A stretch of DNA of 64,000 bases from Selaginella moellendorffii (Eukaryota; Plantae; Lycopodiophyta), in contig NW_003314354.1 in assembly GCF_000143415.4 (NCBI RefSeq), positions 348,575-412,574 of the forward strand, given 5' to 3'. The notes beneath the pieces are model-generated. The model searched no databases and was not told the origin of the DNA. It worked only from the letters and a program-made list of their open reading frames with translations. Below are positions 1 through 27,389 of the stretch, one piece after another. A program made the position numbers and the translations under genes. The number at the start of each line of letters is the position of its first letter. Position 1 is the stretch's first letter.

Positions 1-192
1 CGAAAATGCCATCATGCCATATTGGACAGTTGAATGGAGGAGATCTCATAGGCAAATCCATCATGTAGCTGCTTTTGTGTTTGTAACCTTTCTCTTTCTG
101 CAGTGAAAGCACAGATAATAGCTTCGTTGGACGGTATAGCAGTGCAACCTCCGCGAGGTGGTGGAGTTCCCCGGGAAACTGATGACAATAAC

Positions 193-435
193 GGTGGCTG
201 GAACGCTGGTGATGGTGGACTGGAGGCTATGGTGGCGGAGGATGGAACGCCGGCGGTGAAATGGCTGGAACACTGGCGACAATGGTGGCGGAGGCTGGAA
301 CACCGGCAGCGAGGATGGTCGTTGCGGCTGGACGACAGGCAGCGACAATGCTGGTGTGCTGGAGGCTGGAACAGGTGGCAGAGGCTGGAACACCGGCAGC
401 GAAGATGGTGGTCGAAATGGCTGGGGCAGTGGAGA
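193..435 (+). pseudogene. GW/WG-repeat (AGO-hook-like) coding fragment, frameshifted; copy 1
   Basis: Across frameshifts it reads GGWNAG..GGWNAG..NGWNTGDNGGGGWNTGSEDGRCGWTTGS..RGWNTGSEDGGRNGWGS. Confidence 0.55.
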
Positions 436-668
436 AGTGTGATAACAATGCTACTTGGAACTCCCAGCAACGAGCACGGAGGAGGACCAAGCTCGCGAGT
501 GATACCAATGAAGAAGACAATCCCGAGTAGTCCCTGCATAGAACGCGAGCAGTGGTGAGTCGCAAGTGGTGATGCTGGAGAGGACTAGAGGAGCAAGCGT
601 TTTGGCCGATTTTGGAGAGATTTTAGTTAGCGGGCGAAATCTTTGTTTGACAAGTTTTGGTCGCTCGC

Positions 669-1110
669 TTGGATCCACGGCGCTACAAGGAGATGGTCGC
701 GCTGGGGAGCATCAGCTTCGCCGCGACCCCCAGTTGATGCTGATGGTGATGCCTTCCGCCGCTCGGGCACTGGATCGCGCCGAAGAGCCTGGAATTCTCG
801 ACGTGGGAGGAATTTCAGAAGCTTCCTCAAGCACGGTCTATGCTGAAATTTGGAGATCCGCGAGAAACATGGAGCTCTTTTCTATACTGTTAAGTTGTGA
901 TGTTCTTTTAAATATCAGCAGACTTTTAGAGAGCTGGAAGAGAACGAGACATGAATTACAATAGGAAGAGGAAGCAGGAGGCAGAAGATGCGAAGAGAAA
1001 AACTAAAAGATTCATTTCGGCATTACTGCGAATGGAATGTTGGCCGTGGTAAGCTCTTTCGTTTCGATTCTTTTATGGACGTCAAGCATTTGCTTGCAGG
1101 GAAAACTTAA
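669..1110 (+). pseudogene. Captured, internally deleted fragment of the AFG1-like ATPase gene (source about 33231-33860), intron pieces retained
   Basis: Blocks such as GGAGATGGTCGCGCTGGGGA, TAAATATCAGCAGACTTTTAGA, GAGCTGGAAGAGAACGAGACATGAATTAC and GTGGTAAGCT are shared in order with the gene at 33.2-33.9 kb. Confidence 0.8.
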
Positions 1111-1206
1111 GGGTTTGCTGCTCACTTTGTTTTCAGGCAGAGATATACCCTTTATCACGAATCTTTAAAAGGAAGAGGCCTCAAAGGGTTTCTCCAAACT
1201 AGGGCA

Positions 1207-2379
1207 ATGGCTTTGTGGATCCTCACGCACCCGTTTTCGCGCAGGCCCCCGAGGTACTGGGGCTTGCCTCACAGGTTCACCGTCCTAGCGGCGATCTCCC
1301 TGCTGTGGATAGCTCTCGGCAGCATCCCGCTCTATGGTATGTCCAAGACGCCGGCAGCTGGCTGGGCATGGGTGCGCGAGGTGTTCGCATCCAGCCCAGG
1401 AACTCTCACAGACCTGGGAGTGATATGCTTGGTGGCTGCTAGTCAGGTGAGGGTGAGGTTGCCAATGAGCGAGGAGGTGCCCATGCCCGAAGACAAAGTA
1501 ACGAAGTTCGTCATGTTTGGCGTGTCGCTGCTCCTCCCAGTGCTGCCCCTTGCTGCTGGTCGCTATGGAAGTGATCTCGGTGTTCTCAAGGCGCTGCTGC
1601 TCTATGCCCAGCTCTGCCTTGCGAATTGCGTCGCGTGCTTGCTCGTGATTGCCTGCGAGTTTCGGCGCTGGGGAATAGGAGTTGACATTGCGGAGCTCCT
1701 CCCGGCGGCGACTCTGGCCAAGAGCTTGGTTGTCAAGGCGTTGAGCCCTTTCCCTCCAGCGGCACCGGTTAGTGGCAGAAGGTTTGAAGGTGCGCTGCTT
1801 CACGGGCTGTCTGTGGTGCGTGGCAATTACAGTGGGAGTGCGTTTTATAGTGCTCTTGGCACCGGCGGCGGCGGCGATCTTGCTTCTGGGAATGAAGTGG
1901 TGAGCTTGTGGAGTGTGCTTGCCACAGTCACTTTTGTGGCGGCCGCGTACAAACTCCAGAAGAATCGGAAGTTCACGCTCTTTCAAGTCTCGGACTGGCT
2001 ACAACCGGTACAGTTTCTCGCTTTGTTGGCATGGATCTTGGGCGTCGTTTCCTCCAAGGCGCTCACGCTGTCCGCTGGGCGCGGTTTGCTCACCTGGATC
2101 TTGGTGCCGGTGGCGATGGGTTTACTGTTCAAGGCGTTTGCGGCGTGGGAGAGTTGGGAGCTGGGCTCGTCGGAGACGGATACTTGGGCCGGGGTGGCGG
2201 CTGGAGTGCTGTGCGTGGTGGCGGCTGCCACAGGATGCGTGGGCTCGGCTTTTGGATGGCTGATAGTTTGTCGGCTGATCTACAAACTTTACCGCTCAGT
2301 GTGCTCTGCAATCATGACCCGGCGGATGCTAGAAAAAATGGAGCAGGAGGGGGTGCCCTCCATGTACGCACGCTTCTGA
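1207..2379 (+). CDS. Highly divergent intronless Sec61alpha/SecY-like membrane protein (390 aa)
   Basis: Motifs in Sec61alpha order: IPLYG; ASSPGTLTDLG (cf. ASNRGTLMELG); GRYG; KALSP (cf. KAFSP); GRRFEGAL (cf. GAEFEGAV); GCVGSAFGWLIVCRLIY (cf. GAIGSGTGILLAVTIIY); about 10 hydrophobic segments. Confidence 0.75.
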   Translation: MALWILTHPFSRRPPRYWGLPHRFTVLAAISLLWIALGSIPLYGMSKTPAAGWAWVREVFASSPGTLTDLGVICLVAASQVRVRLPMSEEVPMPEDKVTKFVMFGVSLLLPVLPLAAGRYGSDLGVLKALLLYAQLCLANCVACLLVIACEFRRWGIGVDIAELLPAATLAKSLVVKALSPFPPAAPVSGRRFEGALLHGLSVVRGNYSGSAFYSALGTGGGGDLASGNEVVSLWSVLATVTFVAAAYKLQKNRKFTLFQVSDWLQPVQFLALLAWILGVVSSKALTLSAGRGLLTWILVPVAMGLLFKAFAAWESWELGSSETDTWAGVAAGVLCVVAAATGCVGSAFGWLIVCRLIYKLYRSVCSAIMTRRMLEKMEQEGVPSMYARF

Positions 2380-2459
2380 AACTCAAATCAGGTTTTGTAG
2401 CAAGGGAACAAAAGAAAACGAAAGATTTCAGCAAACCCTGGTGGAAGTATTGTTGATTC

Positions 2460-2758
2460 TTAGATCAATTAAAAAATCTTAGGAAACTAATCAACTGGGT
2501 GTAAGAACATTAAGGGCTATAAGGGCATTTAAGTATAAAAGGCAAAAATTATAACAAAGAGAAAATTTGAATGGACATCAATTCTAGATGCAAAATTGTT
2601 ATCAATTCAAGGACTTGCAAATAGAAAAGCAAAAGAATTAAAACTTAGCCATAATATTGGCTTAATTGAGCAACAAATTGTTTCTAGATACTATTATATA
2701 TCGATAAAGAATAAAAATGAGAAAATAAATTTTTTAATGTATCCAAAGAACAACATAC
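2460..2758 (+). mobile_element. A-rich decayed RT thumb/connection-like remnant (Gypsy- or caulimovirid-like) hosting the nested insertions; continues at 10463-10591 and 16466-17170
   Basis: LRKLINWV and KRKFEWT motifs with stops; the A-rich sequence resumes directly after both insertions. Confidence 0.35.
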
Positions 2759-4566
2759 TGTGAGACACAAAATCCCTAGGCCCCAAAGTGGAGCCGGAAG
2801 GGCGCCACATGGTAGTGGCCGAAGCGAGAGCCAAACGAGCGTAACACGTTTGGACCAGAAGCTCCGACTTGAAAAGTCAAGAGCGGGAGTGGAACTCCCA
2901 ACGAAGTGCTCGAGGAACGAGCACGAAGCGAGCAAAAGGCAAGGCTCCAAAAAGGGACCCAAAAGGACCAACACATGACACGTGGGAGTGTCCGAGATGG
3001 ACTCGAGTTGGAGTCCGAAGTGGAGTCCGAGGTGGACCCGAGTTGGAGTCCGAAGTGGAGTCCGAGATGGACCCGAGTTGGAGTCCGAGATGGAGTCCGA
3101 GGTGGACCCGAGATGGACTCGAGATGGAGTCCAAAGTGGAGTCCGAGATGGACCCGAGATGGAGCCCGAGATGGAGTCCGAGATGGAGTCCGAGGTGGAC
3201 CCGAGATGGACCCGAAATGGAGTCCGAGATGGAGTCCGAGATGGACCCGAGATGGAGTCCGAGATGGAGTCCGAGGTGGACCCGAGATGGACCCGAAATG
3301 GAGTCCGAGATGGAGTCCGAGATGGACCCGAGATGGAGTCCGAGATGGAGTCCGAGATGGACCCGAGATGGACCCGAGATGGAGTCCGAGATGGAGTCCG
3401 AAGTCGAGACCAAGACCGGAACCGAGACCGGGACCGAGACCGAGACCGAGACCGAGATCGGGACCGAGACTGAGACCGAGGCCGAGGCCAAGACCGAGCC
3501 CGAGCCCGAGTCTGAGTCCGAATCCGAGTCCGAGTCCGAGTCCGAGTCCGAGTCCGAGTCCGGAGCCTGAGAGGGTGAAAGCCCAAAGCGTTCGTCTCCC
3601 AGACCCTGGGGGGTTTGGTGAGCTCCAAAAGTATAGTAGGGGGAGGACTGCAGTGGAGCCAGTTTGGCCAGGAAAGGCCAGTTTGGCCCAGGAAGGCCGG
3701 ACCCAGTGTTGGGTGATGAGCTGTCCGCTGGGAAGTCCAAGACTAGAGTGAACACAGACCGACAAGCGGGGTAGCTTGGTGAAGTGTTCAAGAGCCGGCT
3801 CTAGTTCCCCCGGGAGATCGACTGGCCGATGCTCCCAGTCCAAGTGTGGGTGGCACTACCTACTTGGATACCTGGTGTGGCTCAACGGAACCCACTCTAA
3901 GCCCATGGCTAGAGCACCTAAAGGCGATAGGTGGGGAGAGTACCCAGGTGGCTCGCGTAAGGCCACGGTGTTCCGAAATGTTGTCCCAAAGGCCCAGACT
4001 GTGGAAAGGAAGAGGAGCAGTCCTCTGGGGTTGTGACCAAGGACACAGTCATGTGGTGAGGAAGTCCTAGAGGACCGTGGGACTTAGTGGTCGGGCCTGT
4101 GGGCCTCGATCCAGTGGCAGTGTTGGCAAACACGGCCAGGGGCAGAAAGGGACTTGGTAGGAACTGACAAAGGGACTTTGGGGAAGGCAATTCCCCAGGT
4201 CTGTGGGCATCCTAAGGATGCTAAGGAGTGGATCCAGGATGACCCCTCGTAGACAGATGGCCCAGTCTTGGAGAGACGGGATGGTGATGCAAGTGGTATT
4301 GGACCATTTGCGCAGCAAAGGTGAATGGGCATGGCCTTAGCGTAACGGGCCGAGATGTCAGTGGTACCTTTGGGTGTCGGTTTTGGGACCGGACACGTGG
4401 AGCACTTGGACCAGGTGCAAGTGTTGAGTGGCATGGATGCCATTCTTGGGGTTAGCAAGTCCCAAGTCCTGAATTGGACTGATGGAGGTTGTGAATGAGA
4501 CTCCTCCAAGTGGTCGGAGGTGTGGTTAAGTGACTAAAGTAGAAATGGAAAAATTAGTCGCTTACA
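2759..4566 (+). repeat. 5' LTR (1808 bp)
   Basis: TG...CA termini; direct repeat of 8662-10457. Confidence 0.95.
2990..3562. repeat. LTR-internal tandem array of 11/12-mers (GAGATGGAGTCC / GAGATGGACCC) grading into hexamers (CCGAGA/CCGAGT)
   Basis: Directly visible; produces the spurious SPRW/ESE ORFs. Confidence 0.95.
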
Positions 4567-4569
4567 ATG

Positions 4570-4581
4570 TGGTATCGGAGC
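4570..4581 (+). promoter_or_regulatory. Primer-binding site (tRNA-iMet type)
   Basis: TGGTATCGGAGC 3 nt after the LTR end; one mismatch to the canonical TGGTATCAGAGC. Confidence 0.9.
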
Positions 4582-7500
4582 TGTTCCTTAGTCCGACTTT
4601 TATTGGTGCTCAAGTATATCACCACTAGTGTTGGCATCGGAAGGTCCGAGGAGTGGGCCTATCCTTGAGGAGTAGCAAGTCGGGAAGACATGGCTCTCCA
4701 TTACAGTTCATGTGTGAACTTGTAGACGAGGTGGTGGATAGAAAAGGGCCAATAATGGAACGACTTTGGGATCTTGGGAACAGTGCAAGGTTTTCCTCAT
4801 TGAGTTAAGGATGTGATCCGGATAAGCATTTGTCTCAGCAAATTGGCTAAGGTTGTTGTGGTAAACAACTAAAGTTGGGATCACGGGAAAGATAGAGACT
4901 CCAAAACAATAAAGGAGTCACAAGATTATCCTCATATAGTTGAGGTTGGTGCTCATGAATGTGAGACCAAAGGTAATGACCGTGGAAGGTCAAATACGGA
5001 AGAGGACTCAAGTCCTTGAAATGGTAGCCGGGGCTACCTCTAATAAATGCTGGAACAACCCAAGGAGTTGGGGGTGTATTAAGTGGATGAGTTGGTATTC
5101 TCATCACATGGACAAGTAGTCCTAAGGGGCAAAGGTTGCCCCCAGAGAACAAAATCAAGTGTCGGAGTAACACTTGTGAATATAGTCCTTTTGAGTAGGA
5201 CTGGAATGCAAGATGTGTATTCCAGTGAGCTAGTGCCTCACAAGTAGGACCTTACGGGTCGGTGGATTAACCAAGTCCAAAACTGCTAGACGACTCAAGT
5301 AGAGTCAAGGGATGGTCCTAAAAAGGACTGAATGAAGCATTTGGACTGAGGTGCGTTGTACCCCACAAAGGATGGGGGGGGATCATAGGATCCAAGGATG
5401 AGAACAGAGAGTATCTCATCGATGGCTAAATGTGCCATGCTAAAGTTATGGGAAAGGTGTTCCCAGAAGGAAACAACTTTGACATAAAGTTGTGTGTGAC
5501 CTCTATGGGGCAGTGCTAACGGATGGTTGGCATGAGAAAGAGCGGTGTTGGTCTTGGCAAAGACTTAGACACGAAGGGAAATGTGATAGAGGTAGGCTCG
5601 TGAAGCCGATGGTGTGGAGACACCAAATGTGCCAAGGTGTGATACCTTGAGGCTATGTTGGTGGGTTCGTGAGAACCCCTTGCCAAAGGAATCCCAATGG
5701 AAATGGGAATGGCATAGCTTAAGCTGCAAAGCATGCAGTTGGAGTGTGGTGACCCAGATAGTGATGGAGGTGTGAAAGCACCAAGCAATGAGTTGTAAGA
5801 CTTGACAACTATGAGGCAACTAAGCAAGAGGTGCAAAATAACTGGTTAAACGGGTAGAAGGTAGCTACCCAAGACTTCTAGTATAGGGAAGTCGGATATA
5901 CCCTTACGGGGGATAAGTTACTTATGTTGCGATATAGTAAGTCAATGTCATAAAAGGAAATACTCATTGTCAAGAAAGCCATCATTGGGACACCCGAACA
6001 CTCTAGAACACCAGAAGGTGGTGTTTGATGTCGCGAGGGCAATGGATAAAGCCCAAGGGACTAAGTCCCTAGCGAATGATGGATAGAAGGTGCTATCCAA
6101 ATGTCCAAGGTTGTGGAGACAAGAGAGGACTGTCTACCCAAGTTGGACAAAGCCAAAAATGAAATTTTGGCAAGGCTAGTGATGGGCATGTAAAGGCCCA
6201 TAAGCAACAATGTAACCCCAGTGTGTGAGATTATAAGCTGAGCATACCCGAATTGAGGAACCACTCCCCGGGCTATTGGGTAGGTTCATCCCTAAGAATA
6301 CTTGCTAAGGCATGATAGAAAGTGCAAAGCTATCCTCCTAGTCTGGAGGAGAATGACTGAAGGAAAGGTGTGAAGCCAAAGGCAAGTAGTGTTGGGATGG
6401 AACTGAACCATAGAAATCAAAGGGCATATCCAACAGTGGTTATGAAAGTTGGGAGTGGAGAATCAAGAGGGTGCTCGAGGATATTGTTGCTAGCAACCGT
6501 GATGCCATGGAGAGTCTAAAATATGGAATTGTCCATGTTAGACTATATGGCAACTATAAAGCTTGCGAAAGGGGAGGCCTTAGCAAGCTGAGGGACAGAG
6601 TTCCTTCAAGGTTCCCAAAGACGATTCTAGGTAGCGTAGTACCTAGAAAGGCCAAGTGTAAATGGTTCATGGAACGCGCGAAATCAGAGTGGCGCAGCAG
6701 AAGCGTGGTCTTGAAGCTTGCCATGAGGCAAAGTTATCAAGGTTAGGGAAGTAGTTCCCGAGTGTTCAAAGAGAGGGCTTTGAACGAAAGTCGATGGTCA
6801 AGGACTTTCACGCTTATGCAGGAACCATGTTACAATGGTCGGAGGACTTGCCAAGTGAGATTAGCACGTCGGGGGAACAAAGACCCTAGTTGAAGGTGAT
6901 ATCTTCAAAACGGGTGGGCCAGGGGGCCAAGCATGGAGGAGTCCATGCATGATCACAGATATGTCAAGTGAGAGGACTTGGCAGTGTGGAGGAACTAGGT
7001 TCCTAAGCTGTGATCTGTAGCGCGCTTTAAAAAATAAGTTGGTGCACCGGCGTGGGGAGTCACGCCAGGCATCTTGTGTGATGCTGTCCGTAGATGCATA
7101 TACGGAGGTTGGGTTCGAGTCCCGACCCTCTAGTGCTTGGGTTCGAGTCCCAAATCACTAGGGCGTGGTGGTGGTTTGGAATATGAGGACACTCATATTT
7201 CGGTGGTCATGGACTCTCAGTGGGGAGACTGGTTTGGGCACACCGCCAAGCGAGGGATGCCTCGGAGTCGTGATGCACGGTTAGATTGCTTAGTGTGAAA
7301 GCTCAGCATATCTAATTTGAACACTTTGGTGCAAGTGGCACCAAGGTCGTGGTGAGTGAGATGGGGACACCTAATCTCAGTTGCTATGAACCCTTGGCCG
7401 TAAGGGCTAGCTTGGGTGCACCGCCAAGTGTGGGGGATGCCCCCGGGGTTATAGTCAACAACTTGGAGGTCTAGAAGACCAAGTACCTCTTGGCAACTCT

Positions 7501-8647
7501 ATTAAGGTGCCAAGGTGAGATCACTAGGTGATCTTATGGCCAGATAAGGACAAGGTCCTTGGTTGGCTAAGGAATGAAGTTCCTAGTTCAAAATGTTGAA
7601 ATTGAACTGTTTAAGGTGGTGTGGCTTGGTCGTGATGACCAAGTGGGAAGAGCACCTAAGGGAAATAAACTATGTCCGTGCGATGGCATAGTGAGTCCGA
7701 GGAAAGTAGTCTCTATAAAAGACCCATGGGAGGGTCACGAAGTTGGGCCGTGGATAGAGCCCATAGCAGAAGATGCTAAAGAGACATACTAGGGGTGAAC
7801 ATCCTCCGGACTTGGCAAAGAAGAGTCTTTGCTATGGAACCGAAACAATACCTCAAGGAGGGAGGTAGAGATTCGATGTTGCTTGGTGCAACAATCAACG
7901 GATAGGAGCAAAAGATGAGTGGCCAAGATAGGGCCGTGGAATCCCTTGGAAGGAATCCAAGTGACAAAGTTAGGCGAGGAACACTAATGTGTTGGACGCT
8001 AACAAATTGCGGGAAAGGAAGTGTGTTTCCAAGGAGGGATTCCAAAATGCTCCGATTTGGCGAAAGTGGAAGCTCCAAGGGAGGGAGCGGTAAGGTAGCC
8101 AAATGATAGGGCCATGAACAGCCCTAGCACAAAGTATGATAACTGGAACTTTGGCACAAAATAGAAGAGAGGATGATGGTGCCCTCGAGTAGAAAACTTC
8201 CTAGGATGGGAAGTGGAGTTGCACAAAATGTGCAAGGCAAGGTGTCGGAGACACCTAGGAAATTGACTCCAAAAAGTCAAAAGTAAACATTCCAAAGTGC
8301 AAAGGTAGATCAATGGAATCTGTGACTACTCAAGAATGAGTAGTGGAATTGAGTTAGAGAGGGTGTCTCTAACGGGTTTAGCGAGAACTGAACCAATAAA
8401 AAGGAGCAAACCACCCCAGGTGGTCAAGTGAGTCTCTAAGCTGGAGAGACTATCCGCCTTAGAGGATAGGCAAGGCATGGTGAGCCTTTGGTGTCGAACC
8501 ATTGAGGAATATGCAAAAGGCATGGTGAGCCTTCAATGTCAAACCATTGACAAATATTGGCTAGGTGCCAAGGATGGAAATGGTAACACATACGAGTGTT
8601 ACTTTACAAAATGGTTTACCGTTCGATGAGGACATCGAACTTCATCT

Positions 8648-8660
8648 ATGGGTGGTGGAG
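8648..8660 (+). promoter_or_regulatory. Polypurine tract
   Basis: ATGGGTGGTGGAG immediately before the 3' LTR. Confidence 0.8.
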
Positions 8661-8661
8661 T

Positions 8662-10457
8662 TGTGAGACACAAAATCCCTAGGCCCCAAAGTGGAGCCGG
8701 AAGGGCGCCACATGGTAGTGGCTGAAGCGAGAGCCAAACGAGCGTAACACGTTTGGACCAGAAGCTCCGACTTGAAAAGTCAAGAGCGGGAGTGGAACTC
8801 CCAACGAAGTGCTCGAGGAACGAGCACGAAGCGAGCAAAAGGCAAGGCTCCAAAAAGGGACCCAAAAGGACCAACACATGACACGTGGGAGTGTCCGAGA
8901 TGGACTCGAGTTGGAGTCCGAAGTGGAGTCCGAGGTGGACCCGAGTTGGAGTCCGAAGTGGAGTCCGAGATGGACCCGAGTTGGAGTCCGAGATGGAGTC
9001 CGAGGTGGACCCGAGATGGACTCGAGATGGAGTCCAAAGTGGAGTCCGAGATGGACCCGAGATGGAGCCCGAGATGGAGTCCGAGATGGAGTCCGAGGTG
9101 GACCCGAGATGGACCCGAAATGGAGTCCGAGATGGAGTCCGAGATGGACCCGAGATGGAGTCCGAGATGGAGTCCGAGGTGGACCCGAGATGGACCCGAA
9201 ATGGAGTCCGAGATGGAGTCCGAGATGGACCCGAGATGGAGTCCGAGATGGAGTCCGAGATGGACCCGAGATGGACCCGAGATGGAGTCCGAGATGGAGT
9301 CCGAAGTCGAGACCAAGACCGGAACCGAGACCGGGACCGAGACCGAGACCGAGACCGAGATCGGGACCGAGACTGAGACCGAGGCCGAGGCCAAGACCGA
9401 GCCCGAGCCCGAGTCTGAGTCCGAATCCGAGTCCGAGTCCGAGTCCGAGTCCGGAGCCTGAGAGGGTGAAAGCCCAAAGCGTTCGTCTCCCAGACCCTGG
9501 GGGGTTTGGTGAGCTCCAAAAGTATAGTAGGGGGAGGACTGCAGTGGAGCCAGTTTGGCCAGGAAAGGCCAGTTTGGCCCAGGAAGGCCGGACCCAGTGT
9601 TGGGTGATGAGCTGTCCGCTGGGAAGTCCAAGACTAGAGTGAACACAGACCGACAAGCGGGGTAGCTTGGTGAAGTGTTCAAGAGCCGGCTCTAGTTCCC
9701 CCGGGAGATCGACTGGCCGATGCTCCCAGTCCAAGTGTGGGTGGCACTACCTACTTGGATACCTGGTGTGGCTCAACGGAACCCGCTCTAAGCCCATGGC
9801 TAGAGCACCTAAAGGCGATAGGTGGGGAGAGTACCCAGGTGGCTCGCGTAAGGCCACGGTGTTCCGAAATGTTGTCCCAAAGGCCCAGACTGTGGAAAGG
9901 AAGAGGAGCAGTCCTCTGGGGTTGTGACCAAGGACACAGTCATGTGGTGAGGAAGTCCCAGAGGACCGTGGGACTTAGTGGTCGGGCCTGTGGGCCTCGA
10001 TCCAGTGGCAGTGTTGGCAAACACGGCCAGGGGCAGAAAGGGACTTGGTAGGAACTGACAAAGGGACTTTGGGGAAGGCAATTCCCCAGGTCTGTGGGCA
10101 TCCTAAGGATGCTAAGGAGTGGATCCAGGATGACCCCTCGTAGACAGATGGCCCAGTCTTGGAGAGACGGGATGGTGATGCAAGTGGTATTGGACCATTT
10201 GCGCAGCAAAGGTGAATGGGCATGGCCTTAGCGTAACGGGCCGAGATGTCAATGGTACCTTTGGGTGTCGGTTTTGGGACCGGACACGTGGAGCACTTGG
10301 ACCAGGTGCAAGTGTTGAGTGGCATGGATGCCATTCTTGGGGTTAGCAAGTCCCAAGTCCTGAATTGGACTGATGGAGGTTGTGAATGAGACTCCTCCAA
10401 GTGGTCGGAGGTGTGGTTAAGTGACTAAAGTAGAAATGGAAAAATTAGTCGCTTACA
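8662..10457 (+). repeat. 3' LTR (1796 bp)
   Basis: Differs from the 5' LTR by a 12-bp hexamer contraction and about 4 substitutions seen by eye. Confidence 0.95.
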
Positions 10458-11823: not shown

Positions 11824-12017
11824 TGTAAGCAACCAAAGGGAACGACTCGAGAAACGATCTATGGGGTTTAAATATAAAGGGAAAAGGCCTATGAACAAGA
11901 GTGCACCCCCTTTTCCAATCGGTTAAGGGTTTTGGGATATTTGGGGTTAAGCGTCCTTAGGTTTGAATAGTACTGGGTTGGGTGACCTCTCGGGAAGTCC
12001 AAACTCAAGAGCTTACA
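11824..12017 (+). mobile_element. Cassandra-type (5S-bearing TRIM) solo LTR inserted in the Helitron
   Basis: Inverted termini TGTAAGC...GCTTACA; TSD ATCAT on both sides; internal 5S rRNA-like segment. Confidence 0.85.
11946..12000 (+). other. 5S rRNA-derived domain (box A / IE / box C region) inside the solo LTR
   Basis: GTTAAGCGTCCTTAGGTTTGAATAGTACTGGGTTGGGTGACCTCTCGGGAAGTCC resembles plant 5S GTTAAGCGTGCTTGGGCGAGAGTAGTACTAGGATGGGTGACCTCCTGGGAAGTCC. Confidence 0.85.
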
Positions 12018-12190
12018 ATCATCTTCTCTTCGATTGACAGAGATAGAGGTTGCTTACAATCATCTTCTCTTCGATTGACAGAGATAGAGGTTGATCTCGG
12101 TGTTCTTCCGATATGTGTGAGTTGGAAGAGCTCTTGCTGTGATGCAGGCTGGCGAATGGACTCTTGGGAAGGTTGTGTCCATTCCCATCA

Positions 12191-12953
12191 GCATTGCTAG
12201 AAGTAATCAAGTTCTATCATATGATTGTGATGTAAGCATCATCAGGAAGTGGATGAAGAGCTTCACTCTCATCGCCATTGCTAGAAGTAATCAAGTTCTA
12301 TCATATGATTGTGATGTAAGCATCATCAGGAAGTGGATGAAGAGCTTCACTCTCATCGCCACCTTCGCCCTCCAGCACATCCATGATGAATCTGAAGGGA
12401 TTGCTCGACTGGAACTGCCATTGCTAGAAGTAATCAAGTTCTATCATATGATTGTGATGTAAGCATCATCAGGAAGTGGATGAAGAGCTTCACTCTCATC
12501 GCCACCTTCGCCCTCCAGCACATCCATGATGAATCTGAAGGGATTGCTCGACTGGAACTGCCATTGCTAGAAGTAATCAAGTTTTATCATATGATTGTGA
12601 TGTAAGCATCATCAGGAAGTGGATGAAGAGCTTCACTCTCATTGAAGGGATTGCTCGACTGGAACTGCCATTGCTAGAAGTAATCAAGTTCTATCATATG
12701 ATTGTGATGTAAGCATCATCAGGAAGTGGATGAAGAGCTTCACTCTCATCGCCACCTTCGCCCTCCAGCACATCCATGATGAATCTGAAGGGATTGCTCG
12801 ACTGGAACTGCCATTGCTAGAAGTAATCAAGTTCTATCATATGATTGTGATGTAAGCATCATCAGGAAGTGGATGAAGAGCTTCACTCTCATCACCACCT
12901 TCACCCTCCAGCACAACCATGATGAATCTGAAGGGATTGCTCGACTGGAACTG
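12191..12953. repeat. Tandem array of a 143-bp unit (units about 84, 143, 143, 107, 143, 143 bp) inside the Helitron
   Basis: GCCATTGCTAGAAG recurs at 12274, 12417, 12560, 12667 and 12810. Confidence 0.95.
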
Positions 12954-12989
12954 CTGCATATCTGCTTGATCATTTCGAAAAAGAAAATA

Positions 12990-15900
12990 GATATGATACT
13001 CAAACATATTAATCCATATGCACAAGCTTTTAGAATGATGTATGAATTGGAATGAGAAAATATTTCAAGAACTATTATTTCTGGTAGCAATTTACGTGGA
13101 GTTTATATGCTCATTAAAAATGAAGGCACAAACCATCGTCAATATAATACTCCACAGACTAATGATATTGCAACAGTTTTCCAAAGTGAAGATGGTGTGC
13201 CACCTTTTGACCGTGAAATATGCATTCATCCAAAATCATCATAACCACAATATATATCTATTTTAAATGCTAATTGCGATCCTATGGTTTATCCATTGCT
13301 TTTTCCATATGGAGATAGAGCCTAGCATGACAAGCTTTTTTCTAACAAACATGTAACACTCCTTCAATTATGTTTATTTTTTGTCCAAAAGAGATTCAAC
13401 ATTATCAACCTCTACAGTTATATATGACCAAATTTTACATGCTGGAAAACTCACCCAACAATATATTGTAGATGCCTATGTTAAAATTGAAAGCAACAAT
13501 TTACAATACTATAGATCTAATCAAAAAAATATGAGAGTTGATTTTTATACAAGTTTGATGGATTATATTGTTGGCAAAGCTGCTGATGCAAATGCTCAAC
13601 CAAGAAAAATTTTTATTTTACCTTCTACTTTTATAAGAAGCCCAAGAGCTATGCAACAAAATTACCAAGATACTATGGCAATTGTAACAAAATACTCAAA
13701 ACTTGATATTTTCATAACTTTCACTTGCAATCCTAAATAGCTTGAGATATTACAAAATCTGCACCCTAATGAAGGACTTGAAGACTGACCTAATTTAGTT
13801 GCTAGGGTTTTTAACATGAAGCTAAAATATTTTCTCCATGATATTACACAAAATAATATCTTTGGAAGATGTATTGCATTTATATATATCATTGAGTTCC
13901 AAAAAAGAGGTTTGCCACATTGTCATTTCCTAGGCATATTAGATAATGAAAGTAAAATTAAAGACCGTGACACTATTGACCAATATGTATCTACTCAATT
14001 ACTTGACCCTTTATCAGAGCCCGACCTCTTTAAAATAATCACATCACATATGTCCATATGGATTACTAAATCCTCAAAGTTCATGTATAGAAAACAAAAA
14101 ATGCTTCAAAAACTATCCCAAAAACTTCAATGACAGAATTACATATTGTGTGGATGGGTACCTAGAATATTTTAGGCTAAAAAATGGTGACACCTTCCTT
14201 AAAAATGATCTCCAATTGATAACAAATGGATTGTCCCATATAATAAATATTTATGTAAAAAATACAAAGCCCATATAAATGTAGAAATATGTGCATCAAT
14301 TAAAAGTATTAAGTATCTTTTTCAATATGTTTATAAATGATATGATTGTGCAACCATTCAAATCCAAACAGCTACTCAATCTGAAAATGTATTAAATTGG
14401 GATGAAATCACGAATTTTATAAATACCCAATACATTTCAGTACCAGAAGCTATTTGGAGGATATTTAAATTTAAAATGCATGGACACTCACACCCTATAA
14501 TACGTCTATCTATACATCTTCCTGACTTCCAAAATGTGTATTTTACAGAAGGCTCGGAGCACAATGCCTTGCAAAGAGTAGCACATAATGGGACAATACT
14601 AACAAAATGGTTCAAACTCAATATTCATAATCTAAATGCAAGACAATATATCTATGTTGAAATACCTTTACATTATGTTTTCAATAAATCTGCTAATGTA
14701 TGGCAATGTCAAAAAAAGAAAAAGGTTATTCCTCGACTATATTTAATATCTCCTCTAAATACCGAGTTGTACCACTTACATATTATTCTTCTTCATAAAA
14801 AATGAGTGACATCCTTCGACAATATTAAAACTGTTAATGATGTAACTTACTAAAGCTTTCAACAAGCTGCTATTGCTATGAGTCTTTTTGACGATGATAA
14901 CGAGTGGTATAATTGTTTACAAGAAACATGCAATTTTCAAATGGCCCTGGTGGTACTGGCAAAATATATTTATTAAAGATAATGGTAAAATATTTTGAGT
15001 TCTACAATAAAAAAGTGGTTTGTATGGCATGGACAGACATTGCAAGCACACTACTACATAATGGACAAACATCCCATACAACCTAAGTTATTAATTCCAA
15101 TTAATGATATATCCATTTCTGGTTTAACACCTAATAATAGTGTTAGTAGATTTATGAAAGCAATACAAGTGCTTATTTAGGATGAAATTAGTAACACTTA
15201 CCTTTGCAACTGTCAATTGCTACCTACAAGACTTGAAACAAAACAATTCTCCATTCAGTGGCATTGTTATTGTTACAAATGGTGAATTTCGTCAAACATT
15301 ACCAGTTGTCCCACACAATCATCGAGCACATATTATTTCCACATCTGTAAGAATGAATAGTCTATAAAATCTATTTTAAAAGTTTCAATTGCAAACAGAT
15401 ATGTGGCTTGGCCCCAAGTTCCTAGACTAGGCAGAATGGCTATTGAAAGTCGGTGATGCAAATAATTACACACAAAACCCTATTTTACCACTTGATTCTA
15501 TCCTTCTTCCTTCAGAACTAATTAGAAATACTTCTATTACTGATTTCGTATTCCCATGTATCAAAGATATTTCAAATGTTCAAATTGCAGCAAATAGAGC
15601 CATTTTAACACCTCTTAATGATGATACATTTCCAATTAACAACAACATCATCTCTCAATTACCAGGTCCACCTCAAATTTATATTAGTATTGACTCTGTT
15701 AATGTTGAACACCCTGAAGATTTCCCAATTGAATTTCTAAACTCTATCATTCCCTCTAGACTACCACCACACAAATTGATACTAAAAGAATGTTGTATAG
15801 TTATTCTTCTGAGAAATATGTCTCTAACAATTGGATTATGCAATAGAACTCGACTAATGGTCAAAAGAACTTCATATAAAGTTTTGGACTGTGAAATAAT

Positions 15901-16240
15901 TACAGGTGAATTTAAAGGTACTAAAACTTTTATCCCACACGTTAACTTAACACCCTTTAATTCGGATGTTCTATTTCATATGTCTCAAAAACAATTTCCT
16001 CTTCATCTTGGATACTACTTAACAATTTCAAAATGCCAAGGTCAAACATTTGATCGTGTAGGCATCTACTTACCCCAGCCAGTTGTTACCCATAGGCAGC
16101 TCTATGTTGCAATCTCAAAATGCACATCACCACAACAATTTGTAATTCGAGTTGACACAACTTAAACACAAGGCTACTTGATTCCATTCAATTTATCAAC
16201 ATTCACCATCAATATTGTATATAAAGAAGCTTTATATTAA
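12990..16240 (+). pseudogene. Helitron Rep/PIF1 helicase, disrupted
   Basis: FITFTCNPK, IEFQKRGLPHCH, KYLFQYVYK, GPGGTGK, GEFRQTLPVV, QFPL..TISKCQGQT..LYVAISK; many stops and frameshifts plus an internal deletion near 14940. Confidence 0.92.
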
Positions 16241-16808
16241 CTAACTCCTATCCTACTACACCTTAAAACATAAAAACAAACTACAATAAACTTTATTATT
16301 TTTTAACTTTCCCTATGGCCCAATAGATAGCAATGGACTGGTGCTAACAATGAAGGAATCATTTCACAAGGAAATTGTGAGATGTGTGCAAATTCTGTCA
16401 CAAATATATGTTAGTAAGTTTGAGAGGATTTTCCAACTACCTAGCATTGGCTTGGCAAATACTAGTATTATATGAGAACCAAAGAAAAAAAAACAATAAA
16501 AGAAAAAAAACAACAAGAAAATGAAGATGAAATAAAAAATATAAAAACATTACAAACTTATTATGAAGCTATACATAATATACCACTACATCCTTGTAAA
16601 ATATGTAAAAGACTCTAGTTTAAATGTAATAAAAAATATTCAATCAATGCATGATAAATAAAGAAAAGTAAAAAGTCTAGAAAATGTTAGAATGAATGAA
16701 ATTGATCAATATACAGAACAACTAAATGATATTGAAGAAAAAATGATTGCTCTACATATTCTATTTGCAAATAAAACAATACCAAAACAACCTCAATAGT
16801 ACTATCAC

Positions 16809-16899
16809 ATTAGTTGGGAAATTTATTATTCCTCCTTTTATGTGTTGCTGGTATTACCAGCAACACATAAAAGGATGAATTATAAATGTCCCAACTAAT
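16809..16899. repeat. Near-perfect 91-bp foldback
   Basis: ATTAGTTGGGA...TCCTTTTATGTGTTGCTGGTA-T-TACCAGCAACACATAAAAGGA...TCCCAACTAAT. Confidence 0.9.
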
Positions 16900-17338
16900 A
16901 TTAAACCAATATTCAATAGAACATACTAAAAACAAATTCAACTAAATTGAAGATTAAACAAAAAAATGATTATAAATATGGAGTAGCTAGAGAAAATTAT
17001 ATTTATAATAGTATAAAAATAACTGATAAGAAACAAAACTATATAAGAAAAATAAATAAATATAGATGAAAACTGGTTTCATCAAGCACAAAATTTAGAA
17101 AATATAGATAACAAGACATATATAATATTAGAAAATCAATTACAATAAAAATTAAATGAAGATGACAAAAATATAAGTAGGTTGGTCAGATTTCCAATGG
17201 AGTCTAGGAGCTTGATGTTGAATAAGTTTTCCGGGTCTCGAACTTTTCATCCAATAGTAGAACTATAGAGCTGCTCAAAACCAAGTCAGGGGGATTGAAA
17301 AGCACCATCTACCAAAGTATTCATTGCCAAGTAGTTCG

Positions 17339-17652
17339 TAGATGAAATAAAAGACAAGCAAGTGCACTTAGTTTTCCTTTCAAGAGTCTATTTAATCCTT
17401 TCTAGAAATTGCACTATACATTGGACTATTTTCTTCTTAACATTTTAGAACAACCAAGATGGTGAGTTGTTCAGGACATATTTTAACAATTCAACAATTC
17501 AAAAGAGAGGTTGCAAAATAATTAAGTTTACTTTATGTATGTAGGCCGTTGAATATGAAGCAAAAGTGGATCTTCAACATGATTCTTAGGTTTGACTAAC
17601 TTATGGTGTTTCCTTATTTGATTCCGGCTTAGCACAGTAGATTGCTAGAGTT
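17339..17652. repeat. About 315-bp dispersed repeat, second copy at 22609-22922
   Basis: Colinear and moderately diverged by eye (TAGATGAAATAAAAGACAAGCAAG ... ATTGCTAGAGTT). Confidence 0.9.
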
Positions 17653-18074
17653 TGAGAAGAAATTAGTGCGGTTGTGGCAAAAATTAGTGTAGATCTTGTG
17701 CATGAGCTTCCACTCAGGCCCCAGTGAGTGAAAGGCCAATCGCTTGAACCAAAGCTAAAGATCCAGAAGAACTCCTTTGACTTAGGGCGATTGGTGAACT
17801 TCGTCATGATCCAATATTACAAACGGAGCTGGTTTTACCTTCGTGATTGCCATAAGCTGCTGATGTTAAGTTGTGGGATTAATATTTGACGAGCATTCTT
17901 TCATTTGTCCGAGCAAAGTTTACCGAACACTTAAGCCGCATACAAATGGGGCAACAATGGCACTATAACTCCCATCATCATCCACCTACAAAGTACAAAG
18001 TGGATGACTTATTACAACCCCCATCATCATCCACCTGCGGAGTACAAAGTGGATGACTTAGTGTTAGTCCATTT

Positions 18075-18420
18075 TCCCCATCTTACGGTATGTAATTTAT
18101 CTAAAAGGCTCCTTGCTTAGTGGAAAAGATTGTATTGGGTATTGTGGCAAGTTGGACCATAAGTTTATGAGGTTCAGTATGACATCCAACAGGTCAATCT
18201 TCCAGAGATTGTGTATGTATAACGGTTAAAATACTTCATAGAAAGGGATCAAGAATAGCTAATACCACTTACAAATCCGCCGATGCTTTGTCCTGACGTT
18301 CTTTCATATCTCGGCCCATCTACAAAAGAACCCTAATGGTCTTTTATTATTCCAAGAGGAGGGGATGATGTGAAGGCCAAGTGTATGGCTACAATGCCAT
18401 ATACTAATATTAGCATAGTG
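18075..18420 (+). mobile_element. Degenerate Ty3/Gypsy integrase C-terminus (GPY/F-like) + PPT + LTR start
   Basis: NLSKRLLA*WKRLYWVLWQVGP*VYEV...IVYV*RLKYF; AAGAGGAGGGGA then TGT at 18369. Confidence 0.6.
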
Positions 18421-20239
18421 GGATTTTGATAGCTGTCAGATTGATTTTAATTTGAACCACTGGCTCCTGTATATAAACTAGGGTTTTTGGGCTAATTGAT
18501 ATTTATATTTTTTGTATTCCCTTTCTATATTCCATGCACTTATAGAAGTAATATAAATTAAGAAATAAAAACAAACTTTTATTTATAGTTTTAACTTTTT
18601 TATTTGTGGCTATCCATATTCATTAGAAATTCATATCTCTTCACTTTAATTGAGCTTCTTGATATGATATTTATTTGGATATTTATATTTATTATTGTAA
18701 TAATTATGATTGACAACTTGTAGTAAAAAAATTAAAAATAATGTTTTAACATTAATATTTTATATAATTAAATATATCAAAAACTTATATATTATCTTGT
18801 GAAATTAATATATTAACTTGTGAAGTAGATGAAGGCTAAAGATTATGTTTAATTTTAATTTTAATTTAATTTTTATTTTTATTTACCCATAATATAGAAT
18901 CTATATTTACTTTAAAATTATAATAAACAGCTAAAATCTAAGTAAAATGTGAATTAATATTTTTCATTTTTACTCTAGATATTTAGTGAGTTTTTTTTAA
19001 ATTTTATTTAAAATTTTATTTAATTTATCTTTTTTATAAATAATAATTTGACATAAATCTATGAATCAATGGAGGAATATGATTTTTATAATTTCATTAT
19101 ATTTTACTTGTGTATTTAATTTAGTTATTATTTAATTGAAAGCATATCCAAAGTCTATACTATATTAACTTTATATTTAAAGAAATTAGAAAAACTTTTA
19201 TATATAAACATTTATAAATTTTAGTACTTTTAAGTTTTGAAAGGCTTTCAATATAAATATTTTAACTAAATATTAAACAAGCTACAAATAAATAAAATCT
19301 TTAACTATATATTTTCACTAGATTATGTTAGAATGTGCGCCTTGTATTCCACAAAAGCAGTTGCACCATTTATGGTACTGCTTACTGAGTATTGTAGTAA
19401 ACACCCTTCCATTCCCAATTATTTATAATGTATAAAATGGATTATATAACGATAAAATATAATTTTATTTATTTGTAAAAAGTCAGAAAACATTTATACA
19501 TACATATATATGGAGTACTCCCCTGTTCCAGAGAATAATCCTAAAGAAGTAAAAAAAAATTTAAAGAATCAAATGTGTTATATTTCAATAATAAATAAAT
19601 CAAAAATAGAAAACAAAAAATATATATTATCTGCTTAAAAAGTCAAGCTATGAAAATTTAACACAAGTTAAAAAAATTGAACATGCTATTGGATAAGTGA
19701 TTCAGAAATAAAAAATGAAACAAAGAAGAAATATGCAAGTTTTTAGTTTTATTTTTTAAATTATAATAATTTTTTCATTAATTAATTTTTCATTTAATCT
19801 CAGAAATCAGAAATCACTGTCTTGGCACATCTTTCACTTCTGAATTCTCATTATTTTTCCAACATTTATTTTCTCTCATAACTTTTTTCTTCAACACCTT
19901 TCTTTAGCAATGACAATATGCATGCTATGCTTTTTCATGAGCTAGTAGGAGTTCTTGTGTTCTGTAATCACTTGATCTACTTAAAATATATAGACAAGAT
20001 TTCTCTCTTTTGTTTCTCCCTTTTATGATTCTATGACTCTGGTCAGGGATGCCACTGCCTCAAAGGAGAAGGCAAAGGCAAGGAACGATACTGGAAAGGC
20101 AACTCCCCTTGAGAGAGTCTATGAGGTTGTGAACGACGTCCCATCCAGTGAGCACGAAGGCCAGACGAAGCTTGAAAGGAGCTCTCTCCTTGTTTCCTCA
20201 AGTTTTTCTTCAAGCTAGATATGATCTGTGCTGCAGCCA

Positions 20240-22350
20240 CGAAAATGCCATCATGCCATACTGGACAGTTGAATGGAGGAGATCTCATAGGCAAATCCAT
20301 CAGATTCTGTCTAGCTGCTTTTGTGTTCTCTTTCTGCAGTGGAAGCACAAATAATAGCTTCGTTGGACGGTATAGCAGTGCAACCTCCGCGAGGTGGTGG
20401 AGTTCCCCAGGAAACTGATGACAATAACGGTGGCTGGAACGCTGGTGATGGTGGAGGCTGGAACACTGGAGGCTATGGTGGCGGAGGATGGAACGCTGGC
20501 GGTGAAATGGCTGGAACACTGGCGACAATGGTGGCGGAGGCTGGAACACCGGCAGCGAGGATGGTCGTTGCGGCTGGAAGACAGGCAGCGACAATGCTGG
20601 TGTGCTGGAGGCTGGAACAGGTGGCAGAGGCTGGAACACCGGCGGCGAAGATGGTGGTCGAAATGGCTGGGGCAGTGAAGAAGTGCTGGAGAAGGACCAA
20701 GCTCGCGAGTGGTACCAATGAAGAAGACAATCCCGAGTAGTCCCTGCGTAGAACGCGAGCAGTGGCGAGTCGCAAGTGGTGATGCTGGAGAGGACTAGAG
20801 GAGCATCGACAAGACAAGCGTTTTGGCCGATTTGGAGAGATTTTAGTTCGCGGGCGAAATCTTTGTTTGACAAATTTTGGGCTCTTGTTTGTTTGCTCAC
20901 TTGGATCCACGGCGCTACAAGGAGATGGTCGCGCTGGGGAGCATCAGCTTCGCCGCGACCCCCAGTTGATGCTGATGGTGATGCCTTCCGCCGCTCGGGC
21001 ACTGGATCGCGCCGAAGAGCCTGGAATTCTCGACGTGGGGGGAATTTCAGAAGCTTCCTCAAGCACGGTCGATGCTGAAATTTGGAGATCCGCCAGAAAC
21101 ATGGAACTCTTTTCTATACTGTAAGTTGTGATGTTCCTTTTAATAAGAGAACGAGACATGAATTACAATAGGAAGATTTTAAGCATTTGCTTGCAGGGTT
21201 TGCTGCTCACTTTGTTTTCCAGAGATATACCCTTTATCACGAATCTTCAAAAGGAAGAGGGCTCAAAGCTTGTGCAATGGCTTTGTGGATCCTCTCGCAC
21301 CCGTTTTCGCGCAGGCCCCCGAGGTACTGGGGCTTGCCTCACAGGTTCACCGTCCTAGCGGCGATCTCCCTGCTTTGGATAGCTCTCGGCAGCATCCCGC
21401 TCTATGGTATGTCCAAGACGCCGGCAGCTGGCTGGGCATGGGTGCGCGAGGTGTTCGCATCCAGCCCAGGAACTCTCACAGACCTGGGAGTGATATGCTT
21501 GGTGGCTGCTAGTCAGGTGAGGGTGAGGTTGCCAATGAGCGAGGAGGTGCCCATGCCCGAAGACAAAGTAACGAAGTTCGTCATGTTTGGCGTGTCGCTG
21601 CTCCTCCCAGTGCTGCCCCTTGCTGCTGGTCGCTATGGACGTGATCTCGGTGTTCTCAAGGTGCTGCTGCTCTATGCCCAGCTCTGCCTTGCGAATTGCG
21701 TCGCGTGCTTGCTCGTGATTGCCTGCGAGTGTCGGCGCTGGGGAATAGGAGTTGACATTGCGGAGCTCCTCCCGGCGGCGACTCTGGCCAAGAGCTTGGT
21801 TGTCAAGGCGTTGAGCCCATTCCCTCCAGCGGCACCGGTTAGTGGCAGAAGGTTTGAAGGTGCGCTGCTTCACGGGCGCCGCGTACAAACTCCAGAAGAA
21901 TCGGAAGTTCACGCTCTTTCAAGTCTTGGACTGGTTACAACCGGTACAGTTTCTCGCTTTGTTGGCATGGATTTTGGGCGTCGTTTCCTCCAAGGCGCTC
22001 ACGCTGTCCGATGGGCTCACCTGGATCTTGGTGCCGGTGGCGATGGTAAAGGCTTTTGCGGCGTGGGAGAGTTGGGAGCTGGGCTCGTCGGAGACGGATA
22101 CTTGGGCCGGGGTGGCGGCTGGAGTGCTGTGCGTGGTGGCGGCTGCCACAGGATGCGTGGGCTCGGCTTTCGGATGGCTGATAGTTTGTCGGCTGATCTA
22201 CAAACTTTACCGCTCAGTGTGCTCTGCAATTATGACCCGGCGGATGCTAGAAAAATTGGAGCAGGAGGGGGTGCCCTCCATGTACGCACGCTTCTGAAAC
22301 TCAAATCAGCTTTTGTAGTTTATCATCAGCAAGGGAACAAAAGAAATAGA
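20240..22350 (+). repeat. Segmental duplicate of 1-2425 (GW fragment 20429-20677, AFG1 fragment 20901-21197, Sec61-like gene)
   Basis: High colinear identity with the window start, with several indels. Confidence 0.95.
21277..22297 (+). pseudogene. Sec61alpha-like copy 2, frameshifted
   Basis: 134-bp deletion (copy-1 positions 1808-1941) near 21878 shifts the frame; two further 9-bp deletions. Confidence 0.88.
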
Positions 22351-22949
22351 CGGTTTTCAGCATTCACCTGTTAATTCTTGTAAGAAACTAAAAAATTCTC
22401 AAACTACTTTGTGGATGGATGAGGCATGGCTCTAGGCACTGGGCGGCGAAGATATCAGCATGCTCCACAGATTGTGCCAGGACTTTGTAACAGGCACTGG
22501 TCACCGGATGGGAAAAGGGTGACAGCGAGCAATATGGGATATGTCCAGCAGCAGTGACCAATCATCAGCTCATGCCATGAGAGTGTAAGATCTTGGCTAG
22601 GCAGTTTCTAGATGAAATAAAAGACAAGCAAGCACACTTAGTTTTCCTTCCAGGAGTTTATTTAATCCTTTCTAGGAATTGCATTATACATTGGACTATT
22701 TGCTTCTTGACATTTTAGAACAACCATGATGGTGAGTTGTTCAGGATGTATTTTAACAGTTCAACAATTCAAAAGAGCGGTTGCAAAATAATTAAGTTTA
22801 CTTTGTATGTGTAGGCCGTTGAATCTGAAGCAAAAGTGGATTTATGACATGATTCTTAGGTTTGACCAACTTATGGTGTCTCCTGATCCTATTCTGGCTT
22901 GGCACAGCAGATTGCTAGAGTTCTATATTTTCAAAATTTGTAACCATTG

Positions 22950-24196: not shown

Positions 24197-24566
24197 GCCT
24201 AAGTGATATATTAATTATAATACTAATACTATACCATATAGATGTATATAAGTACCCCAATTAATATATTTATATAAGTACCCCAATAGAATTATTATAT
24301 TTATATAAATTTAAATTTATGAAATAATTCATTAAATATGCGAATTAATACATTTTTGTTAAATAGTAAATAGAGAATATCCTAGTATAGTTTCAACTGT
24401 CAGTCGAGAGTTCCTAGTATATGAGTAATAGGCATGTCCTGGAAGTCAACCTCACGTTAATATTGTGGTGGCAGACTTGAGGTTCTTGACTGGCAGCATG
24501 CGTCAGCAGCACGGCCTGTGGTACTTCTGCACCCCCACTCGATGGTCAGCTCGATGTTTAGCCTGG

Positions 24567-26009: not shown

Positions 26010-26199
26010 CTTGGAAAGAAAGAGAGAGCGCTCGCTAGAAACACCAAATCTTAACCTAGTTAAGAAAATGATTTAAGTAACCCTTGAGGGAAACGGTAAT
26101 TGATGTATCTTAGATTAAAATGTGGTTAGATAAATACATTTAGCAGTAAGGTTAATTAAATATATTACTTATTAGGCTTTGAGAATACGTAGACAAAGG

Positions 26200-27190: not shown

Positions 27191-27389
27191 GGGCTCGGGT
27201 GCTGAAGGAGCAATGCGGGGTAGCTACAAGCTCAAAATATTTCGAGAATTTCTTACCAGGGAATTTCGCCGCTGAGAATGGAGGAACCGAGGAGCTGATC
27301 TTCGCAAAGCACCGGATGATTCGCGATCGCACCCTCGCCTCGATGCTGCTGCAGTAGCACGCGCAAGCAATTGAGTGGTTCCGATCGAG

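Follow-up and report, generated by a model that had tools for sequence, protein, structure and literature searches.

Can a Sec61-alpha channel subunit lose the loops by which it docks the ribosome and persist as an expressed gene under selection? This question is raised by a stretch of 64,000 nucleotides (nt) from the lycophyte Selaginella moellendorffii (hereafter the window, to which nucleotide coordinates refer unless stated otherwise; it begins at about position 348,576 of scaffold GL377658.1, which has 741,856 nt), in which an open reading frame (ORF) at positions 1207-2379, called copy 1, encodes a Sec61-alpha-like protein of 390 amino acids (aa); a related copy 2 lies at 21277-22294. 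Sec61-alpha is among the most conserved membrane proteins of eukaryotes. Copy 1 is a strongly reduced new variant of Sec61/SecY, and it probably belongs, as a genuine, transcribed gene that encodes a protein, to a small tandem family derived from Sec61-alpha/SecY in S. moellendorffii. The gene and the parts of its product, with TM denoting transmembrane helices, are the following.

1207-2379, forward strand: coding sequence (CDS) of copy 1, from ATG to stop, for the 390-aa loop-less Sec61-alpha-like protein
1174-2558, forward strand: approximate unspliced transcript, with a 5′ untranslated region (UTR) of ~30 nt and a 3′ UTR of ~180 nt; its ends are the ends of assembled contigs
1243-1800, forward strand: TM1, plug (IPLYG, R57), TM2b, TM3, TM4, TM5 and the FEGA motif of loop 5/6 (aa 13-198), the part with clear homology to Sec61-alpha
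1906-2160, forward strand: predicted TM6, TM7 and TM8 (aa 234-318), placed by position and by the fold model
1963-1977, forward strand: five-residue cytosolic turn NRKFT (aa 253-257) at the site of canonical loop 6/7, ~25 aa gone
2050-2085, forward strand: shortened lumenal loop 7/8 (aa 282-293), ~28 aa gone
2161-2181, forward strand: seven-residue cytosolic turn LGSSETD (aa 319-325) at the site of canonical loop 8/9, 33 aa gone
2182-2304, forward strand: TM9-TM10 hairpin (aa 326-366), with significant likeness to Sec61 TM9-10

The relationship of copy 1 with the Sec61/SecY channel is visible in its N-terminal half and in its last two helices. A phmmer search against the sequences of the PDB returned only Sec61-alpha/SecY proteins, with E-values of 5e-13 to 1e-5 over aa 19-216 and an additional weak match at aa 326-366. 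Alignment of the family with 12 Sec61-alphas by hhalign gave a probability of 99% (E 6e-18), placing aa 13-198 on Sec61 residues 26-220. A Sec61 hidden Markov model (HMM) scored 81 bits on the N-terminal half and 21 bits on aa 321-390 (TM9-10), and neither score was reached by any of 500 shuffled sequences. In the plug region IPLYG, R57 and A61 are kept in the alignment and a helix is predicted at residues 51-59; the Pfam domain Plug_translocon (PF10559) matches aa 35-65 at a sub-threshold 18.1 bits (E 0.0023; cut-off 22.1), and the NCBIfam SecY model, which requires 300 bits, reaches only 29.6. When 1.84 billion representative sequences were scanned in full with HMMER, the Selaginella paralogs came up at E < 1e-100, followed by 36 other matches at E 7e-11 or weaker, restricted to aa 2-268. 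Ten of these distant matches were scanned, all having full SecY and Plug domains of Pfam; those that could be traced come from rice, Artemisia, Rhododendron, a bovid, a metamonad, a microsporidian and Asgard archaea, none of them from Selaginella. Judged by these alignments, the N-terminal half (aa 13-198) and the TM9-10 hairpin are homologous to Sec61-alpha, and the family as a whole is a Sec61-alpha/SecY derivative whose identity has fallen to about 22-26%.

The most conspicuous feature of copy 1 is the loss of the loops in the C-terminal half. Deletion lengths were measured against one plant Sec61-alpha in MAFFT global alignments with canonical sequences. At loop 6/7, 25 aa are absent (plant residues 259-283, including the equivalents of K268 and R273), with exact boundaries that rest on MAFFT, on short local motifs (LATV, KL) and on helix order, TM6-8 having no detectable similarity to guide them. 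At loop 8/9, 33 aa are absent (plant residues 390-422), including the GHR motif and the equivalents of H404 and R405. Furthermore, the lumenal loop 7/8 is short by 7, 5 and 16 aa (28 aa), the N-terminus by 13 aa and loop 2/3 by 5 aa. A first-pass annotation of this DNA, made by eye, had described copy 1 as a Sec61-alpha derivative with an intact ORF and seemingly without both ribosome-docking loops. MAFFT reproduces that alignment, the two strings cited in it are present (KLQKNRKFTLFQVSD at aa 249-263 and WELGSSETDTWAG at aa 317-329), and both loops are indeed reduced to tight turns; the shortened lumenal loop 7/8 and N-terminus had been overlooked.

Binding of canonical Sec61 to the ribosome occurs mainly via loops 6/7 and 8/9 and the N-terminal helix of Sec61-gamma; in loop 8/9, H404 and the universally conserved R405 touch uL23 and 28S rRNA, and in loop 6/7, K268 and R273 touch rRNA (Voorhees et al., 2014, PMC4081569). 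Point mutations in L8 greatly lower the affinity for the ribosome, and mutations in L6 block co-translational translocation (Cheng et al., 2005, PMC2171681). All four contact residues (K268, R273, H404 and R405) have their equivalents within the segments deleted from copy 1. Since loops 6/7 and 8/9 bear the ribosome contacts in canonical Sec61, the copy 1 protein is most likely unable to dock in the canonical way; loss of this docking is very probable and well grounded in the alignment, and it is reasonable to suppose that the protein would be incapable of normal co-translational translocation. As for the channel itself, the equivalents of the pore ring are V72, V76, I161, P166, F259 and I353, that is, five hydrophobic residues of six and one proline, while the polar cluster of the lateral gate (T86/Q127/N300) aligns with A77/L110/P267; the TM7 assignments F259 and P267 are tentative, as the alignment has no statistical support in that region.

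Structure prediction points in the same direction. A first AlphaFold run, based on a multiple sequence alignment (MSA) of the family and 12 Sec61-alphas, gave a mean predicted local distance difference test score (pLDDT) of 62.6 and a predicted template modelling score (pTM) of 0.61. It places TM1 at residues 20-38, the plug at 51-59, TM2b at 73-84, TM3 at 95-116, TM4 at 126-152 and TM5 at 161-179 in the N-terminal half, followed by TM6 at 234-252, TM7 at 258-281, TM8 at 294-318, TM9 at 326-342 and TM10 at 348-380, so that loops 6/7, 7/8 and 8/9 span 5, 12 and 7 residues, respectively. When the three family sequences were used alone, the pLDDT was 38 and the packing uninformative, with helices and short turns at the same places; both runs yield ten helices in SecY order and gaps of 5-7 residues between TM6 and TM7 and between TM8 and TM9. 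With the first model, Foldseek matched Sec61-alpha/SecY structures over the whole length (E 1e-10, TM-score 0.66-0.74). VIA-align superposed it on Sec61-alpha residues 14-465 with Z 28.1 and a root-mean-square deviation of 3.6 Å over 352 residues, a fit obtained from an MSA including Sec61. A search of the ESM Atlas by shape placed Sec61-alpha first (TM-score 0.80) and accessory SecY2 second (TM-score 0.63, 415 aa). Because the MSA of the first run contained Sec61, the packing of the C-terminal half is not independent evidence, unlike helix count, order and spacing. The models suggest that a ten-helix SecY-like core is retained with TM6-8 remodelled.

Copy 1 is contained, for most of its length, in at least 16 transcriptome-sized sequencing runs from at least seven studies. 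Contigs of four runs from four studies, mapped on window 1-2760, are colinear with the genome and cover only the interval from 1174/1180 to 2441-2558; coverage is zero at 1-644 and 2577-2760 in these four RNA-like runs. One contig (1275-2555) has 0 mismatches to copy 1, and the end of one contig at 1180 adjoins an Illumina adapter. This pattern fits an unspliced mRNA of ~1.4 kb, and copy 1 is intronless, as had been proposed. GenBank has the ORF only inside a longer fusion model of 680 aa, SELMODRAFT_427690, whose final 390 residues match it at 100% identity. We rejected this model as a gene structure, as no contig joins the upstream exons and coverage begins at 1174-1180.

The upstream sequence drawn into that model has features of its own. 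The duplicated regions 103-560 and 20240-21176 contain overlapping ORFs with Gly/Trp/Arg-rich repeats (GGWNAGDGG-like), which GenBank joins to the Sec61-like ORFs in SELMODRAFT_427690 and SELMODRAFT_427691. At 680-708 and 930-959, deeper contigs (~1.0-1.2 kb, one of 319 nt) match only these 30-nt pieces in all four runs, the rest of each contig being unrelated; their probable source is transcription of a diverged relative of the upstream region at another place in the genome.

Copy 1 belongs to a family that is present on both haplotypes. A word-index protein search found three relatives only, all uncharacterised S. moellendorffii proteins. The other haplotype, represented by scaffold GL377624.1, carries a short paralog (SELMODRAFT_423035, 344 aa) and, 16 kb downstream, a long paralog (SELMODRAFT_423037, 393 aa). 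The haplotype of the window has three copies, namely SELMODRAFT_427686, which is the allele of the short paralog and lies 17.8 kb before the window, copy 1, and copy 2. The latter, annotated in GenBank as the read-through model SELMODRAFT_427691, occupies, according to its flanks, the allelic position of the intact SELMODRAFT_423037. Complete ORFs are thus kept in four gene copies over the two haplotypes, and on both of them the locus is neighboured by genes for Spt5, a cytochrome P450 and a calcium-dependent protein kinase (CDPK); it is a genuine plant locus. Two further features define the array within the window.

21277-22294, forward strand: copy 2, a pseudogene with a frameshifting deletion of 134 nt (copy 1 nt 1808-1941) and further small deletions
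1-2433, forward strand: duplicated segment containing copy 1, matching 20240-22362 at 87-96% identity

Selection on the ORF was estimated from the ratio of nonsynonymous to synonymous substitution rates (dN/dS) by the Nei-Gojobori method with a one-sided Fisher test. The long and short paralogs differ with a dN/dS of 0.56-0.66 at a synonymous divergence (dS) of about 0.26 (p 0.0008-0.012), and the two alleles of the short paralog with a dN/dS of 0.28 (p 0.02). Constraint is concentrated in the N-terminal half (0.41) and in the transmembrane helices (0.42), with p about 0.0005. When the observed divergence between paralogs was placed at random on the CDS in a neutral simulation, a mean of 5.4 stop codons arose and the frame stayed open in 13 of 5000 replicates. 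Within the gene body every indel has a length divisible by three; the only one that does not, of 10 nt, falls in the last dozen codons and accounts for the differing C-terminal tail of the short paralog. Between haplotypes, the short paralog is 98.7% identical in its CDS and 70-88% in its flanks. The copy 1 ORF is maintained by selection, which is moderate and strongest in the membrane helices. The first-pass annotation had set its proposal against a dN/dS near 1 without expression; what is found is a ratio of 0.56-0.66 together with RNA-like contigs from four studies.

What such a protein might do can be sketched as follows. The family would have arisen from a Sec61-alpha/SecY channel subunit in which TM1-5, the plug and TM9-10 stayed recognisable, TM6-8 were remodelled, and all three loops of the C-terminal half were trimmed to turns of 5-12 residues. 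The product is most likely neither a canonical ribosome docker nor a motor-coupled translocon, and our best guess would be a ribosome-independent, mostly closed SecY-core protein of the endoplasmic reticulum (ER) membrane. Pairing with Sec61-gamma and Sec61-beta may persist; in canonical Sec61 these small subunits contact parts of the helices that are best conserved in copy 1. The data show homology, helix order, loop loss, transcription and a non-neutral upkeep of the ORF; the loss of ribosome docking, ER location and any partner binding or transport by the protein are what we infer from them. Tentatively, as a possibility that we would not press, copy 1 could be a minimal SecY core that acts in the ER membrane without ribosome, Sec63 or motor and evolves fast within a lycophyte lineage; it might form a passive channel for leak or retrotranslocation, or it might regulate the canonical translocon by titrating its partners. 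The roles of insertase, retrotranslocon, leak channel or decoy named in the first-pass annotation are speculation.

Comparison with known channel subunits helps to place the protein. With canonical Sec61-alpha (SEC61A1, yeast Sec61p, plant SEC61-alpha) it shares the N-terminal half, TM9-10, the order of the ten helices and the superposition of the model (Z 28); on the other hand, it has 390 aa instead of about 475, its identity of 22-26% contrasts with >85% among the plant sequences in the match set, loops 6/7, 7/8 and 8/9 are turns, Pfam SecY does not match, and the gene is an intronless member of a tandem array in one species. Bacterial SecY2 is likewise a shortened, diverged SecY paralog beside a main channel and forms the second-nearest cluster in shape, which is a structural resemblance only. 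SecY2 shares its locus with SecA2 and Asp partners and continues to work with a cytosolic motor. Copy 1, by contrast, lies in a plant nuclear genome, belongs to the Sec61 (eukaryotic/archaeal) type, has no SecA2/Asp neighbours, and has lost the loops for docking motor and ribosome. Yeast Ssh1 and vertebrate SEC61A2 offer another parallel, each being an extra copy of the channel subunit beside the essential one. Both keep full-length loops 6/7 and 8/9. Copy 1 lacks them. The structures matched by the copy 1 model include one of Ssh1 (2ww9), which, as its title states, was solved on the 80S ribosome; Ssh1 binds translating ribosomes (PMC8503631). If the proposal made here is true, a ten-helix derivative that is expressed and selectively kept, though devoid of loops 6/7 and 8/9, would offer a natural test case for a SecY core free of cytosolic partners, and it would exemplify extreme rate acceleration following duplication of an essential gene. 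Its practical value is limited for now, with one species and a moderate constraint.

Several observations weigh against the view that copy 1 encodes a functional, ribosome-independent SecY core. Some of them concern what the protein is. The Sec61 HMM gives zero signal for aa 231-320 and hhalign does not align TM6-8, and sequence statistics therefore cannot confirm the descent of these helices from Sec61 TM6-8. Of the two Pfam domains that the first-pass annotation took as diagnostic, the plug appears at the sub-threshold score given above, and SecY (PF00344) gives no match even at E 10. The predicted tertiary structure depends on the MSA containing Sec61. The residual turn KNRK at loop 6/7 is still basic (K252, R254, K255) and might allow some weak contact with rRNA. 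In addition, the sequencing runs that contain copy 1 are taken as RNA from an automated guess and from the coverage pattern. Two protein databases yielded no orthologue outside S. moellendorffii; both seem to be devoid of Selaginella transcriptome-contig proteins, because the cluster of copy 1 has only two members, both from GenBank, and this negative result therefore does not show that other lycophytes lack the gene. A language-model search of the Atlas with the copy 1 protein gave nothing usable (best score 0.76, an unnamed cluster), and the literature yielded no relevant paper on Selaginella together with Sec61, on the SELMODRAFT identifiers or on Sec61 as a divergent, intronless or retroposed gene.

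Other observations concern the strength of the constraint, and they are those on which a different explanation can be built, namely that copy 1 is a decaying duplicate, a transcribed and functionless copy of Sec61-alpha on its way to becoming a pseudogene, the loop deletions being damage. The constraint is only moderate: dN/dS reaches 0.80 in the C-terminal half, not significantly below 1, and 0.81 outside the helices. These estimates are blurred by gene conversion, as the dS between long and short paralogs drops to 0.044 at aa 301-360 (window 2107-2286) against about 0.26-0.35 elsewhere, which suggests a recent conversion over TM8-TM10. Copy 2 is frameshifted and already a pseudogene, the short paralog has additionally lost 40 aa of loop 5/6, and a weak relic (68-73% identity) of the 3′ half of a further copy lies on GL377624.1 (L002, 8135-8562), ~1.5 kb upstream of SELMODRAFT_423037, with no counterpart at the matching relative position in the window. 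The missing polar cluster of the lateral gate and the restriction of the family to one species in the databases would fit the same scenario. Other findings speak against decay. In a tree of the N-terminal half the stem of the family measures ~3.3 substitutions per site, longer than the entire sampled diversity of eukaryotic Sec61-alpha, and yet at this distance from any Sec61-alpha four copies on two haplotypes have complete ORFs. The divergence between paralogs alone should have produced the several stop codons seen in the neutral simulation; the indels in the gene body are in frame; for the whole gene dN/dS lies significantly under 1, with about 0.4 in the transmembrane helices, and ten hydrophobic helices remain at the correct spacing. 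Taken together, we consider a decaying duplicate unlikely.

A further alternative is a regulator or decoy that does not itself conduct polypeptides. According to it, the surfaces of TM1-5 and TM10 would bind Sec61-gamma, Sec61-beta or another partner of the translocon and would titrate or re-route it. Indeed, conservation is centred on TM1-5, the plug and TM9-10, the side of the lateral gate (TM7-8) and the cytosolic docking loops being remodelled, and in the canonical complex Sec61-gamma clamps TM1, 5, 6 and 10 while Sec61-beta touches TM1 and TM4. The same pattern, however, is equally expected from slower evolution of the N-terminal half, and this neofunctionalised form appears quite unlikely to us.

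The preferred reading, a transcribed and constrained Sec61-alpha derivative of the plant, leaves the question of origin. The tree of the N-terminal half is a polytomy from which the point of attachment of the family cannot be read, and approximately unbiased (AU) tests reject neither grouping, be it with plants (p 0.52) or with Asgard archaeal SecY (p 0.63); because the tree does not resolve, the parent gene is not identifiable. The eukaryote-type FEGA motif in loop 5/6, which the Asgard rows of the alignment do not have, favours a eukaryotic parent. A source in horizontal transfer, a virus or a mobile element, to which the failure of the tree to join the family to plants, the Asgard result and the absence of introns could be credited, is very improbable, since the plant constraint is equally compatible, the Asgard pull is the expected long-branch artefact, FEGA is present, ordinary plant genes flank the family on either haplotype, mobile-element hallmarks are absent with the nearby long terminal repeat (LTR) element inserted later, and none of the 1.84 billion representatives outside Selaginella is closer than canonical Sec61-alpha.

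Copy 1 had also been called probably retroposed, and for this we found no positive evidence. No A-tract follows its 3′ end in 2380-2700, target-site duplications not having been searched for, and the copies share upstream sequence within a segmentally duplicated tandem array. The similarity between the segments stops 54 nt past the stop codon, which means that the end of the 3′ UTR and the poly(A) site of copy 1 lie in unrelated sequence. The hallmarks of an old retroposition event would have eroded. Canonical Sec61-alpha of Selaginella, with which an intronless copy would be compared, presumably has the intron content known from other plants. Retroposition and an origin from the plant's own Sec61-alpha are both compatible with the data and unproven.

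The surroundings of the array show the following. An LTR retrotransposon occupies 2759-10457, starting ~200 nt downstream of the 3′ end of the copy 1 mRNA and ~380 nt past its stop codon. An identity of 99.1% between the two LTRs (2759-4566 and 8662-10457) marks the insertion as young, and the LTRs carry long imperfect tandem repeats (about 2990-3570). Between this element and copy 2, the region 12000-20000 is AT-rich, with a GC content of 25-37% against about 45-55% in the remainder of the window. Finally, window 24254-30866 has a syntenic counterpart of 88-90% identity on the other haplotype (in L002), which contains an uncharacterised gene of 445 aa, one for a cytochrome P450 and the beginning of a CDPK gene.

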